NCBI GenBank assembly: GCA_002269645.1
Contig: NIVC01000301.1
Coordinates: 634,386-698,385 of the forward strand
Reading direction: 5' to 3'
Source of the DNA: Macrostomum lignano
Taxonomy: Eukaryota
DNA length: 64,000 nucleotides
A program made the position numbers and the translations under genes. The notes under the pieces are model-generated. The model was given only the letters and a program-made list of their open reading frames with translations, searched no databases and was not told the origin of the DNA. Positions 19,001 through 43,000 of the stretch are shown here, one piece after another (the first letter of the stretch is position 1; the number at the start of each line of letters is the position of its first letter).

Positions 19001-22000
19001 GCAGAGGGGAGGAGGGGGAGACGAGGAGCAGCCAGTCTGACCGGTTTTGCTCGGCGCGTCGCCTGAATGTCTCAAGGGATTCGCGAGGCGAGGCGGAGAC
19101 GAGCAGACAGATTGCTTACAGTGTCCCCCATGGAGACTGCAGCAGCGCCTTATCCTGTTGGGTGTGGGATTGGTATTGAGCAATCTATGCGGTTGTTGTC
19201 AAAACTAAAGTATTTCATTTCGAATTTTGCAACGAGGGCTTTTTTATGACATGACTCGTGCGCCCTCGGCTTACCCGGCCTTTCGTGCTCATCGCTGCTT
19301 ATTGAGCCCTCTCGCCTTGTTTTGCACGCGGCTTTCAGAGCTGCGCGTCAGCAAAAAATTTTATGCCCAAAGTCTGCCTGCTCGTTTGAGCTTTTAAAGT
19401 TCCTCCTTTAAACTGACTGCTCAAAGTGGCTCAAGTTGGATGGAGAGCCGGCAAACAGAATTCTAAATATAGCTGCCTGTCTTACCTGCCACCGCGCCTC
19501 ACTCAGCTCTCAGCTCTGCTCTCAGTCTAGCAGTTCCCCTGCTCACTCAGCTCTCAGTCTAGCAGTCCCCCTGCTCACTCAGCTCTCAGTCCAACAGTTC
19601 CCCTGCTTACTCAGCTCTCAGCTCAGCTCTTAGTCTAGCAGTCCCCCTGCTCGCTCAGCTCTCAGTCTAGCAGTTCCCCTGCTCACTCAGCTCTCAGTCT
19701 AGCAGTTCCCCTGCTCACTCAGCTCTCAGCTCAGCTCTTAGTCTAGCAGTTCCCCTGCTCGCTCAGCTCTCAGTCTAGCAGTCCCCCTGCTCGCTCAGCT
19801 CTCAGTCTAGCAGTTCCCCTGCTCACTCAGCTCTCAGTCTAGCAGTTCCCCTGCTTACTCAGCTCTCAGCTCAGCTCTTAGTCTAGCAGTCCCCCTGCTC
19901 GCTCAGCTCTCAGTCTAGCAGTTCCCCTGCTCACTCAGCTCTCAGTCTAGCAGTTCCCCTGCTCACTCAGCTCTCAGCTCAGCTCTCAGTCTAGCAGTTC
20001 CCCTGCTCGCTCAGCTCTCAGTCTAGCAGTTCCCCTGCTCGCTCAGCTCTCAGTCTAGCAGTTCCCCTGCTCACTCAGCTCTCAGCTCAGCTCTCAGTCT
20101 AGCAGTCCCCCAGCTCACTCAGCTCTCAGTCTAGCAGTTCCCCTGCTCGCTCAGCTCTCAGTCTAGCAGTCCCCCGGCTCACTCAGCTCTCAGTCTAGCA
20201 GTTCCCCTGCTCACTCAGCTCTCAGCTCAGCTCTCAGTCTAGCAGTTCCCCTGCTCGCTCAGCTCTCAGTCTAGCAGTTCCCCTGCTCGCTCAGCTCTCA
20301 GTCTAGCAGTTCCCCTGCTCACTCAGCTCTCAGCTCAGCTCTCAGTCTAGCAGTCCCCCAGCTCACTCAGCTCTCAGTCTAGCAGTTCCCCTGCTCGCTC
20401 AGCTCTCAGTCTAGCAGTCCCCCAGCTCACTCAGCTCTCAGTCTAGCAGTCCCCCAGCTCACTCAGCTCTCAGTCTAGCAGTTCCCCTGCTCACTCAGCT
20501 CTCAGTCTAGCAGTTCCCCTGCTCACTCAGCTCTCAGTCTAGCAGTTCCCCTGCTCACTCAGCTCTCAGTCAAGCAGTTCCCCTGCTCACTCAGCTCTCA
20601 GTCAAGCAGTTCCCCTGCTCACTCAGCTCTCAGTCAAGCAGTTCCCCTGCTCACTCAGCTCTCAGTCTAGCAGTTCCCCTGCTTGCTCAGCTCTCAGTCT
20701 AGCAGTCCTCCTGCTCACACCGCTCTCACTCCAAACTCGCAGGCTGCTGGCATTCATTCTACCCACATTCGATCAGCCGGCCCTGAGGTCACTCAGGGTC
20801 ATGCGGCCTCTCAAACTGGTCACCGGGTTTGAGAGTAAGTAGCCATGCAGTCCCCCGGAGACTGCGCTGTCGGCCAAGCGCGCACACTGCCGCGCAGAAG
20901 CCCCGGTTGCAGGTGTCCCAGTCGGGAAGATCAGGCCTCAACACTGCTTATATATTGATAAATGTACTCCGTTTGTCTTGTGTACAATATATTAGCGCAC
21001 TGTCCTAGGCTCAGAGTCCGGCTTTGTAACTGCAGCGAACCCCGACTGGCCCGGTGAAGTTTTCAAATTTTGTTTTCACACCCAAAGCTTTTGTCCCCCA
21101 CCGCAAGGCACCCCCTAGACCAACCTCATTCAAAGCACAAATGGCATATTTATGCAATGTTCAAGTTGTCTTGTGCATAGGAGAGCCCAGTGCCGGTTGT
21201 TGCACTGTATAGCAGTAAACAACATGCCTGCATACTTAGCTTTAATCATAGTTGATTTTGTTTTTCCCCAGTCGGTCAGGCAGACCTGAAGACGCCTCCG
21301 TAGACTGCAGAAACCCAGAAACTGTGTAGCTGAAACTTGCGCAGATCTCTCAAGCTTTGCATGCCAACCAGCAGCTGCCCTCTGCATCCGAAGCAAAGCT
21401 GATGTTGTTTGCTATCGCAACGCGCTCTTTGCAGGTTCGTCACCCTGTTCGCCTCCAACCAGAGCAGCTTCGACCTGCGGACGCTGCGGGCAGTGCGGGT
21501 GCTGCGCCCGCTCAAGCTGGTGTCCGGAATCCCAAGTACAGCAGCCCAGCTCGTTCGCTTATAGTTTATTTCTCTCTCCAAGCCACAGATTGTTTTTATA
21601 AGCTTAGATTTTTAATCACAATTTTACTCTATCGGAATCGGATTACAGCTTAGACTGTTTTAATTTGCATCTGACAGCAGCATGATGTCATGAATAACTT
21701 CACTGCCTAGAACTGAATAACCAATATGTTATAAAGCCTGCAGCTATCACTAACTTGACTACCTGGGACCGAAATTTTACACTGCTTCTTCTCCTTCTGA
21801 GCTCTCTGGCAACTGTATTCAAAATTCATTAGAGACACGCGACTTTCCTTCTATAACTAATTTTTTTTCCTTATGTTACTCAGCCTGCTTGTTGTTGCCA
21901 ACGCTCCTGCGGACTTCTCTGATCCCGCCTGCCCCCCATCCCTGGAGAATCAAGGGAGCAGCCCCCCTCAGCCCCCCCTCAGCCCAAGCAAAATTGCCTG

Positions 22001-40000: not shown

Positions 40001-43000
40001 TTCTGATATTTCTACTATCAGTAGTGCGATGAGGAAGCGCGAGTAGTCAAATAGTTTCATTTTCGCTAAATTTCAGAGTGCTGAAAAACTCAATGGCGGC
40101 TACAAATGTGAAGATGGGACCGGTGCCCGACTACCGCAAGGAGATGGCAATCTTCTACGTCATCTTCTTTATCGTGTTCCCCTTCTTCTTTGTGAACATC
40201 TTCGTGGCCTTGATCATCATCACCTTCCAGGAGCAGGGCGAGAACGAGCTGGTTGACCAGGAGATCGACAAAAATCAGGTGCGGGGCTTTGACAGGAATC
40301 GACTTTTATTTTTGAAAGTTTGCACTGACTGACCCAGCCACACTCGCGCGCCCCTCCAGCGCCAGTGCATCGACTTTGCCATCAATGCCCGTCCGCTGTG
40401 CCGCTATATGCCGAAGAACCAGAACTCCATCAAGTACAGAATCTGGCGCCTCGTTGTGTCATCGCCGTTCGAGTACTTCATCATGGTGATGATCGCGCTC
40501 AACACTCTCATACTGATGATGAAGGTGGGTCGCTGATTCGAGTCGCTGAACCGTACTAATCATGCTGCTATAATGTTGAGAAAGATTTATTCTGCATTTG
40601 AACTCAAACATGGAAGATTTTTTTAAATCCAACATGTATCAAAATGTGTCACAATGGTGCAAAGGGAGACAGGATGGCTCGAGATAAGTCAGGAATGGGT
40701 AAAGATGAGTCAGGATGACTCAAAATGAGTCAGAATGGCTCAAGCTGAGTGTCAAGCTGAGTCAGGGTGGGTCAAGATGAGTCAGGGGGTCAAGCTGAGT
40801 TAGAATGGGTCAAGCTGAGTCAGGACGTGTCAGGATGGATCAAGATGAGTCAGGACGGCCCAAGATAAGTCAGGATGGGTCAGTTGAGTCAGGGTGGGTC
40901 AAGATGAGTCAGGATAGGTCAGTATGAGTCAGGATGGGTCAGTATGAGTCAGGATGGGTCAGTATGAGTCAGGATGGGTCAGTATGAGTCAGGATAGATC
41001 AGTATGAGTCAGGATGGGTCAGTATGAGTCAGGATGGGTCAGTATGAGTCAGGATGGGTCAGTATGAGTCAGGATGGGTCAGTATGAGTCAGGATGGGTC
41101 AGTATGAGTCAAATAAGTCAGCATGAGACAGGATCGGTGAGGCCTAGACTACCAAGAACACTCTTGCTGAATGTGCCCCGGGAGTTCAAGATTCTCAGTC
41201 GCTTCCACTCAAACTCAAGCGCAGTAAGGCATGCCTTTAACCCAGCTGAGAATCTGAGCCTCCCAGACAGAGGTGTCAATCACGCGCGTCGCCAAGCAAA
41301 AGCCGAACCTGCAGAAGCGGAAATCCGGGCTGCAAAGCGGAGCCTCAGCTGTCAATTTTGTCTCATTGTTTCAGTTTCACGACCCGACCAGAAGCTACAA
41401 CACGTACAACGATATCATGAAAAATCTGAATACGGTTTTCACAATTGTGTTCACCATCGAATGCATATTGAAAATGATCGGATTAGACATCCGGGTAGGA
41501 CTGTGAAGCCGCAAGCCAAAAGTTTATTCTATCAGTGCTAAATTGTTTTTGGAGACGCCCTGCACGACACAAAATATTTATTTGCTTGCAATTGCCAAAC
41601 TTAAAGACTGGCATCAATCAAATATTATTTGCCTCGAGTGTGCAGCTATCAACTTTTCTAAACAATATTTTAAAAGCTTAAGTGACCGTCTTTGACCGCA
41701 GGAAGTAGGCTTTGGCTCGATTTTTCTTCTCTCGGTTTTTGTTTTCGCTTATTTAAAACAAACAATATATTCTATTTTATGCCTAACATGCCACTGCTCG
41801 GGGATTGAATAGGAGGCACGTGATCAGATAATTACAGCCACCTCACGCCCTTTCTCTTTCGACACCTCACTAGCAAAGCCACCTCACACCCTTTCAACCC
41901 TCACTCGAACAGCCACCTCACACCCTTTCAACCCTCACTCGAACAGCCACCTCACGCCCTTTCTCTTTCTACCCCTCACTAGCAAAGCCACCTCACACCC
42001 TTTCTACCCCCACTCGCACAGCCACCTCACGCCCCATCCCTTTCTACCCCTCACTTGCACAGCCACCGCAAGCCCTTCTACCCCTCCCCCGCACAGCCAC
42101 CTCACGCCCTTTCTATCTCTCACTCGCACAGTCACCTCACGCAATTTTCAAACTCTTTTCACTCACTAAATGTCTGTTTTTAGTAGCTGAATTTACCGGG
42201 GAATAATGGGTTCCAGTGGAATCCCTGAACTTTACGAACGCACTGCGCTGCAACGCCACCACTCGCACTGTGATCTCTCAGTACTACAGACGCGAAAGCC
42301 AGACAAAGGACGGGCTGGAGGACCCCGAGCACCAGTCCTATCGGCATTATTGCAGCACTCTGGTCTACCTCAACTCAGCATTCACCGTCATGTTCTCAGT
42401 AGAGTGCATACTCAAAATTCTCGCCTTCGGTCCCAAGGTGATGCTCACCAACCAGCGACCGCCGAACCAAATTGTATTCACGTAGCTGTTATAGTTGACC
42501 CCGAGGCCAGCCCTCTTGTTGCGTTTCACTCTTCCGAGCACCAAACGCTTAATTTCGTGTCACGCGAAATCCGTTCGATTTGGTTGCCAGTTGTTTGTCC
42601 ACCCGTGCTAATGGTAGCTTTTCTTCGTTTTGGATAAACCAGTCTCGATTATGTCTTGCTGTTCGTAGCCGGATGCAAATCCTGAGGTTCTACCTGAGCT
42701 CATGAAGTACTGAGAGCAGCACCTTAGAGACTTAGTCATTCCGCACCAAATGTAGTTCTTCAAAATTGTGTTGTACGAGCTAAAATTAAATAACCACCAC
42801 CCATAGGCTACTAACAAGATGAGCAAATGGGCATTGTTGTGCGCCGGCTTTGCACTTTTATTTTGTAAATTTTAACTGACGTCCAAAATTTTTGCATGCC
42901 TGGCTGCTTTATTAGCACTGGTATTTTGCTATATTATCTTTTTTCTTAGAAATTCTATTGCACAAATATTTCTGTTGTTTACTATTGTCCTATTTGATTT

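Follow-up and report, generated by a model that had tools for sequence, protein, structure and literature searches.

We analysed a window of 64,000 nucleotides (nt) from the flatworm Macrostomum lignano (contig NIVC01000301.1), which carries one gene predicted to encode a Cav2, i.e. presynaptic-type, high-voltage-activated, calcium-channel alpha-1 subunit. The gene contains four tandem pairs of homologous exons, and we find it likely that only one copy is spliced into the transcript at each site, in the third pair through a clash of splice sites belonging to the U12 and U2 types. The pairs, here called 1a/1b to 4a/4b, cover segments S3 to S4 of domain I (IS3-S4), the same segments of domain II (IIS3-S4), the selectivity filter, P2 helix and S6 of domain II, and segments S1 to S2 of domain IV (IVS1-S2). 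A preliminary description of the window had reported four homologous, phase-matched pairs at these places, and our exon-by-exon reading and a self-BLASTP comparison both agree with it. That all eight exons are open, and that they span 20743-42437, was also confirmed; 1a begins at the former position and 4b ends at the latter.

The genes, exons and splice signals described here lie on the forward strand, and positions are those of the window. Pair 1 is preceded by a constitutive IS2-S3 exon (18515-18654), whose last two bases belong to a Gly codon and which has the U2-type donor GG/GTAAGC, where the slash marks the exon end. Exon 1a (20743-20834, 92 nt) encodes the end of IS3, the S3-S4 loop and IS4, exon 1b (21435-21535, 101 nt) a canonical IS4 with five charges, and the constitutive exon that follows (22717-22863) the IS4-S5 linker and IS5. 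Pair 2 stands between constitutive exons for IIS2-S3 (25376-25488, with a phase-0 end and the donor GTGAGT) and for IIS4-S5 and IIS5 (28572-28703). Its members are both 113 nt long; 2a (26089-26201) covers the end of IIS3, the loop and IIS4 and has the GC-AG intron donor TAG/GCAAGT, and 2b (26885-26997) covers IIS3-S4. The constitutive exon before pair 3 encodes the P1 helix of domain II (29043-29115) and has the U2-type donor CAG/GTGGGA. Exon 3a (30738-30858, 121 nt) then carries the domain II filter, the P2 helix, the loop and most of IIS6, exon 3b (31254-31371, 118 nt) the canonical version of the domain II filter, P2 and S6, and the end of IIS6 is found in a constitutive exon at 32499-32599. 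Pair 4, finally, is flanked by constitutive exons for the III-IV linker and IVS1 (40360-40524) and for IVS3 (43068-43151), and consists of 4a (41375-41494, 120 nt), encoding the IVS1-S2 loop and IVS2, and 4b (42282-42437, 156 nt), encoding IVS1-S2 and S2.

Within all four pairs the members have equal entry and exit phases, which fit the flanking constitutive exons, and when the exons were spliced in silico, one member at a time, there was no stop in any product. The self-BLASTP comparison of all open segments on the forward strand returned exactly four pairs (E = 4e-5, 4e-11, 2e-16 and 2e-7), the remaining matches being inter-domain similarity and simple repeats only. Tiling the whole protein against the window with tblastn revealed no further duplicated exons at E < 0.05. 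The protein identity within the pairs is 37-63% (15/40, 17/32, 22/38 and 25/40 residues), and judged against other phyla 1b, 2a, 3b and 4b are the canonical forms and 1a, 2b, 3a and 4a the less canonical ones. The splice sites had been described as intact, and signals are indeed kept in all eight exons; the statement has to be qualified for 2a with its GC donor, for 3a and 3b with their U12-type donors, and for 4b, which has two in-frame acceptors, at 42282 and 42336. The latter, which gives a shorter exon, was set aside as PAA86585.1, the GenBank protein model of this gene, and all flatworm homologues fit 42282; it could be a minor alternative 3' site of 4b. Three large mini- and microsatellite arrays stand in front of alternative exons. 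One of 32/108 base pairs (bp; 19498-20728) stops 15 nt short of exon 1a, another, made up of roughly 228 GACA units (29793-30705), stops 33 nt short of exon 3a, and a 40/60-bp array (40666-41138) stops about 240 nt before exon 4a.

The whole gene extends from a start codon at 16143 to 53053, with the stop right after 53050 and the last residues ENAYWC. The translation corresponds to PAA86585.1 ('hypothetical protein BOX15_Mlig012532g2', Macrostomum lignano) along the length of the model, which was retrieved with a 1,320-residue query; shorter queries had matched Cav2 proteins of arthropods, molluscs and flatworms at no more than about 70% identity. The assignment to Cav2, already made in the preliminary description, is upheld by the ranking of structures in the Protein Data Bank and by the position of the gene in a tree, where it groups with flatworm Cav2. 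A query from IS2 to IS5 scored 316 bits against human Cav2.2, 306 against Cav2.1 and 294 against Cav2.3, as compared to about 220-226 bits for Cav1 and about 158-170 for Cav3, and the top full-length matches are all titled 'type A alpha-1/cacophony'. The protein is built of four domains of six segments each, which are homologous to one another, and the EEEE filter motifs are found in the translation as TMEGW (I), TGEDW or TSEDW (II), TGEGW (III) and TGEAW (IV). The AID in the I-II linker, which is predicted to bind the beta subunit, and the IQ motif are both recognisable, and relatives carry the Pfam domains Ion_trans, GPHH and Ca_chan_IQ. The C-terminus ENAYWC (53036-53053) resembles the PDZ ligand, acidic-x-WC, with which Cav2.1 and Cav2.2 end in vertebrates, and is predicted to be such a ligand.

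The third pair offers an explanation of how one copy could be chosen. Both members end in U12-type 5' splice sites, which were overlooked in the preliminary description. The site of 3a, GTATCCTTT (30859-30867), matches the U12 consensus GTATCCTT perfectly and is identical in contig NIVC01000272.1, where a second copy of the gene is found, and the site of 3b is GTATCCTAG (31372-31380); both donors read T/GTATCC. The intron in front of the constitutive exon at 32499 has a perfectly matching U12 branch point TCCTTAAC (32461-32468) and its 3' AG at 32497-32498, and the first AG past the branch point is the one used. The pyrimidine fraction before this acceptor is 0.44, the lowest of 16 acceptors. 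These signals are rare in the window. On the forward strand GTATCCT occurs four times, two of them being the donors of 3a and 3b, and TCCTTAAC occurs twice, each time upstream of one of the two U12 acceptors of the gene. All other acceptors have at least two mismatches in their best branch-site match, and those of 3a and 3b, which are U2-type, at least four.

The intron between 3a and 3b would accordingly be a hybrid with a U12 donor and a U2 acceptor, removable by neither spliceosome. Skipping of both exons would be blocked in the same way, the U2 donor upstream being incompatible with the U12 acceptor downstream. With U12 donors on 3a and 3b, U2 acceptors in front of them and a U2 donor upstream, exactly one of the two exons would therefore be expected in the messenger RNA. 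The orthologous intron in Lottia and Aplysia, which lies at the same place, also has a U12-type donor and branch site, and about 90 genomic open reading frames (ORFs) from many animals read FGN-CIL, which is T/GTATCCT, across the intron. To judge from this distribution, the U12 intron after 3a and 3b is ancient and conserved in Cav genes. Its 5' splice site would have been copied along with the exon in the duplication.

There is a second U12-type intron in the gene, of the AT-AC kind, which separates the IS1 exon from the coding exon that opens the gene (16367-16579). Its signals are the 5' splice site ATATCCTTT, the branch site TCCTTAAC at 16543 and the 3' AC at 16578-16579, and PAA86585.1 confirms the junction. 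No small nuclear RNA genes were found in the 64-kb window, which was the scope of this search, and no genome-wide search was made.

A different kind of constraint applies in pairs 1-3. The exon lengths there are not multiples of three, and because of this inclusion of both members, or of none, would shift the reading frame; on double inclusion in pairs 1 and 2, stop codons are reached within the next exon. Steric hindrance was rejected as a mechanism because the two members of a pair are separated by introns of 395-787 nt. Docking and selector RNA sequences of the Dscam type were also considered and set aside; there were one to three short inverted repeats per cluster, which is about what chance would give, and no one-to-two architecture was seen. 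Among the inverted repeats, two of 14 nt with 86-93% complementarity fall on splice sites, 31373-31386/31513-31526 on the 3b donor and 42275-42288/42703-42716 on the 4b acceptor. The number of inverted repeats equals the chance expectation, and we keep these two as leads only, on account of their position on splice sites.

PAA86585.1 is the sole annotated model of the gene and contains one exon of each pair, namely 1b, 2b, 3a and 4b. Its junction IIEW-G-PFEYM needs the AT-AC intron at 16367-16579, and because such a junction is not normally called by ab initio predictors, the model is probably derived from a transcript. The second GenBank copy of the gene, on NIVC01000272.1, has 97-99% DNA identity to the window in unique DNA and represents either a different haplotype, a homeologue or another assembly of one locus. 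The same eight exons are present in the same order in this independent contig. This bears on the possibility that the duplicates are assembly artefacts, which could arise where haplotypes or homeologues are collapsed or wrongly joined in a genome that is partly tetraploid. The assemblies of M. lignano are repeat-rich, a 1.5-kb unit is perfectly repeated in tandem at 44.9-48.2 kb, and many minisatellites lie beside the alternative exons. The members of a pair are, however, only 37-63% identical in protein, as against the 97-99% seen between haplotypes or homeologues, and together with the independent contig this effectively refutes an artefact, to which we attach next to no probability.

A comparison between the two copies also gives a measure of constraint. 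In the eight alternative exons only 2 of 934 positions differ, both synonymously (GCA>GCT in 1b and TCA>TCG in 3a), as compared to 314 of 18,676 positions (1.7%) in non-exonic DNA, and the cores of the constitutive exons differ at 17 of 3,371. The pooled rate in the alternative exons is eightfold below that of the introns (Fisher p = 5e-5). Taken together, 1a, 2b, 3a and 4a have one substitution in 446 nt, where about 7.5 were expected. Furthermore, in the two exons that lack clear orthologues the divergence steers clear of family-invariant columns. Exon 3a is changed at 2 of 19 family-invariant columns and at 13 of 21 variable ones (p = 0.0009), and exon 4a at 1 of 7 and 23 of 30, respectively (p = 0.004). 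Ratios of nonsynonymous to synonymous substitution rates per exon were unusable, the pair members being saturated at synonymous sites and the copies too similar, and only pooled counts are given. The pooled tests indicate that both members of the pairs are under purifying selection.

Sites 1 and 4 have counterparts in many other animals. The a-type of exon 1 has the motif DQPA.R.LRV.RPLKLV.G..S, without the outermost arginine (R1), and is the sole form in one of the Cav2 paralogues of parasitic flatworms (Schistosoma, Echinococcus, Schistocephalus). It is also present in the molluscs Aplysia and Patella, and in the Lottia locus two a-type exons (11305-11394 and 11569-11661 of that locus) stand in tandem with one of b-type (12550-12654). 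Exon 1a agrees with parasitic-flatworm paralogue A at 25/32 residues and with the Lottia and Aplysia a-type at 17-20 of 31-32, and 1b agrees with the Lottia b exon at 32/35. Annotated IS3-S4 alternatives occur in Lineus, Haliotis, Patella and Daphnia, and annotated IVS1-S2 alternatives in Haliotis, Patella, ticks, Centruroides, Limulus, Penaeus and Daphnia. Exon 4a is nearest to forms in Tubulanus and Gigantopelta, and 4b agrees with both parasitic-flatworm paralogues at 30-33 of 52 residues. It seems from these occurrences, in a nemertean, molluscs and arthropods, that sites 1 and 4 are old and widespread alternative-exon sites of protostomes.

At sites 2 and 3 no alternatives were found, neither in ten species clusters of annotated isoforms nor in the loci of Lottia, Aplysia, Brachionus, Schistocephalus and Schistosoma. 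Exon 2a is nearest to parasitic-flatworm paralogue A (31/38), and 2b has the derived signature ASLFE..WQ in common with paralogue B, so that the exons match in sets, 1a and 2a with paralogue A and 1b and 2b with paralogue B. The paralogue loci themselves have single exons at IS3-S4 and IIS3-S4. A neighbour-joining tree from 890 constitutive columns places the Macrostomum gene as sister to A and B together, with a bootstrap of 100/100 for A+B and 96/100 for the flatworms. The simplest reading would be that pairs 1 and 2 predate the gene duplication toward the parasitic flatworms, and that the daughter genes each kept one version. This would also imply that site 2 was already doubled in the ancestor common to Macrostomum and the parasitic flatworms.

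At site 3, exon 3b agrees with other phyla at 28-32 of 40 residues. An exhaustive HMMER search with exon 3a against 1.84 billion representatives gave no closer relative bearing a 3a-type exon; it did find one metagenomic channel with LTSEDW. The nearest analogue of exon 3a, also found in this search, is UniParc UPI00060F11D9, a 138-residue genomic ORF of an AT-rich organism in which the domain II filter/S6 exon stands twice in tandem. Each copy is followed by the U12 donor read-through GNCIL, and the first copy is the divergent one (MAASAYF), as in Macrostomum. No other species examined has annotated alternatives at all four sites. The earlier impression that the combination is unusual is thus right for the four sites together and has to be given up for sites 1 and 4 taken singly, which are widespread in protostomes. 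The four-site layout and the pair of pore exons appear to be new here, to which we add the U12/U2 account and the match between exons and paralogues.

A number of points weigh against four used pairs and the U12/U2 clash. The 3b donor GTATCCTAG deviates at +8 from the consensus. Between branch site and 3' splice site there are about 31 nt in the intron after pair 3 and about 30 nt in the AT-AC intron. The optimum for U12 introns is 11-13 nt (PMC3584512), and the orthologous intron in Lottia has about 11 nt. The long distance lowers the certainty of U12 splicing, which would still be possible; that both U12 introns of the gene have a distance of around 30 nt (16543-16579 and 32461-32498) may reflect a peculiarity of minor-intron recognition in the Macrostomum lineage. 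For pair 4 no exclusivity mechanism was found, and the reading frame stays open with both exons included (120 + 156 nt); some automated ant, bug and spider models carry both IVS2 exons in tandem. The tree is distance-based, and the long branches of the parasitic flatworms could inflate the support for A+B. For exon 3a, with its VLTSEDW and N-S-S sequon, no named species offers a clear orthologue. The two copies of the gene are less than 2% apart, which gives the constraint tests on single exons low power and significance in the pooled tests only. We infer the use of 1a, 2a, 3b and 4a solely from their conservation and intact signals. Finally, exon 4b in NIVC01000272.1 has a 1-bp deletion, CCC where the window has CCCC (42323-42326; 35734-36188 in the locus record from NIVC01000272.1), a frameshift that cuts PAA86585.1 off at 1,255 residues. 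The deletion could be real, or an error in assembling the homopolymer.

Some of these points would fit with an alternative in which some of the exons are dead relics, skipped pseudo-exons that happen to be open still, so that the gene makes one or a few channels. About 0.2 of 35-codon stretches are open by chance, and the only known model lacks 1a, 2a, 3b and 4a; the missing orthologue of 3a and the frameshift in 4b point in the same direction. However, 2a and 3b, which are absent from the model, are the canonical forms in every other phylum, and 1a, also absent, occurs in molluscs and is all that one paralogue of the parasitic flatworms has at this site. Orthologues exist for six of the eight exons (1a, 1b, 2a, 2b, 3b and 4b). 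Relics would not be expected to keep splice signals and phase in all eight cases or to have substitutions eight times below those of the introns, both of them synonymous, and the divergence of 3a and 4a spares the family-invariant columns. We think it unlikely that the exons are relics, and hold to pairs of which both members are in use.

The preliminary description also suggested that the exons are used in coordinated a or b sets by position. This finds no support in PAA86585.1, where the order is b, b, a, b. The matches to the paralogues suggest another linkage, of 1a with 2a and of 1b with 2b. It is possible, though we would not call it probable, that all exons are used in a few fixed combinations (1a+2a 'A-like' and 1b+2b 'B-like') and that pair 4 is sometimes doubled or skipped. 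The parasitic flatworms keep the a-types of 1 and 2 in one gene and the b-types in the other, and 1b stands with 2b in PAA86585.1; as to pair 4, its exons keep the frame, and there are the arthropod models with both IVS2 exons. Against fixed combinations speaks that no mechanism for long-range coordination is visible, with the sites 5-20 kb apart and the inverted repeats of the clusters at chance level, and doubling of the IVS2 segment would give the channel a wrong topology. With independent choice of one exon per site the gene could give 16 combinations, which is a ceiling only, and these may be biophysically distinct channels.

The four choices would affect the channel in different ways. 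Exon 1a lacks the outermost arginine of IS4, and has thereby one charge fewer than 1b, and its S3-S4 loop is three residues shorter. Because of the lost S4 charge and the shorter loop, 1a should shift activation, for which the IS4A/B exons of the fly are a precedent. In pair 2 the charges are equal and the loop is different. Exon 3a has a Ser in place of the Gly before the domain II filter Glu, a Gly found without exception in more than 350 further Cav sequences, and it also has an N-S-S sequon and an altered P2 loop and S6. Because of the Ser-for-Gly exchange and the added glycosylation sequon, 3a may alter permeation or block. The S1-S2 loop of 4a is 12 residues shorter than that of 4b, and the end of S2 is different. 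Going one step further, one could imagine that pair 3 is a hard-wired U2/U12 switch with two permeation or block phenotypes, and that the a and b types of the voltage sensors mark two kinds of channel, older than the two Cav2 genes of parasitic flatworms, into which they were later separated. We put this forward tentatively and with considerable doubt. If true, it would mean that alternative exons turned into paralogues through reciprocal exon loss.

The closest known counterpart is Drosophila cacophony, also a Cav2, whose exons IS4A/IS4B and I-IIA/I-IIB are mutually exclusive, and where the choice between IS4A and IS4B sets the activation voltage and synaptic localisation and targeting (PMC11828482). 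Both are single invertebrate Cav2 genes with tandem exons, which in Macrostomum are probably exclusive as well, and in both the IS3-S4 site alters the number of S4 charges. Cacophony has two pairs, whereas Macrostomum has four and lacks a duplicated I-II linker exon; the pairs in domains II and IV are not described for the fly gene. The alternative IS4 of arthropods (Daphnia, butterfly) keeps R1, contrary to the a-type of flatworms and molluscs. For pair 3 the best parallel is exons 6a/6b of the vertebrate JNK genes (MAPK8-10), which are mutually exclusive through a U12/U2 hybrid intron (PMC1874599, PMC3584512). There too, two tandem homologous exons follow a U2 intron and precede one of U12 type, which is the arrangement predicted for pair 3. 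The gene family and phylum are others, and the branch distance in Macrostomum is unusually long, about 31 nt.

Vertebrate Cav1.2 (CACNA1C) also has mutually exclusive exons, 8/8a, 21/22 and 31/32. As in Macrostomum, several transmembrane segments are encoded by alternative tandem exons and one of them is a pore-lining S6; Cav1.2 belongs, however, to the Cav1 subfamily, its exons concern IS6, IIIS2 and IVS3, and none of them is known to carry a selectivity-filter residue. In Lymnaea LCav3 the exons 12a/12b in the domain II turret reportedly change ion selectivity. They resemble pair 3 in being alternative exons in the outer pore of domain II, but LCav3 is of the Cav3 family and 12a/12b cover the S5-P turret and not the filter, P2 and S6. 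We know of no U12 involvement at these exons. In the two Cav2 paralogues that Schistosoma, Fasciola, Echinococcus and other parasitic flatworms have, the IS3-S4 and IIS3-S4 exons map one-to-one onto the a and b types of Macrostomum; the diversity comes from gene duplication in the former and would come from splicing in the latter.

Most invertebrates have one Cav2 gene for all their synapses, and where the diversity of presynaptic channels comes from is a live question, to which two exon pairs are already relevant in flies. The Macrostomum gene would have twice the number of switches of the fly gene, one of them on the exon with the selectivity filter. It would also be a second, independent natural case of the JNK-type arrangement with a U12/U2 hybrid intron, this time in an ion-channel gene. 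What are exons in one lineage appear to be paralogues in another, which bears on the trade-off between splicing and gene duplication in evolution. Drugs might be directed at the two Cav2 paralogues of the parasitic species, and in M. lignano, a transgenic laboratory model, the role of each version could be studied by exon-specific knock-outs.

Two further features of the window lie outside the alternative exons. A unit of 1.51 kb is present in slightly more than two copies at 44950-48200, in the intron after the IQ-motif exon (pieces starting at 44975, 46485 and 47994, 100% identical); either it was duplicated in tandem very recently or the assembly is at fault. Two genes for Cys-loop ligand-gated ion channels follow further downstream, at 56500-58050 and 62000-62650, with the Pfam domains Neur_chan_LBD and Neur_chan_memb.

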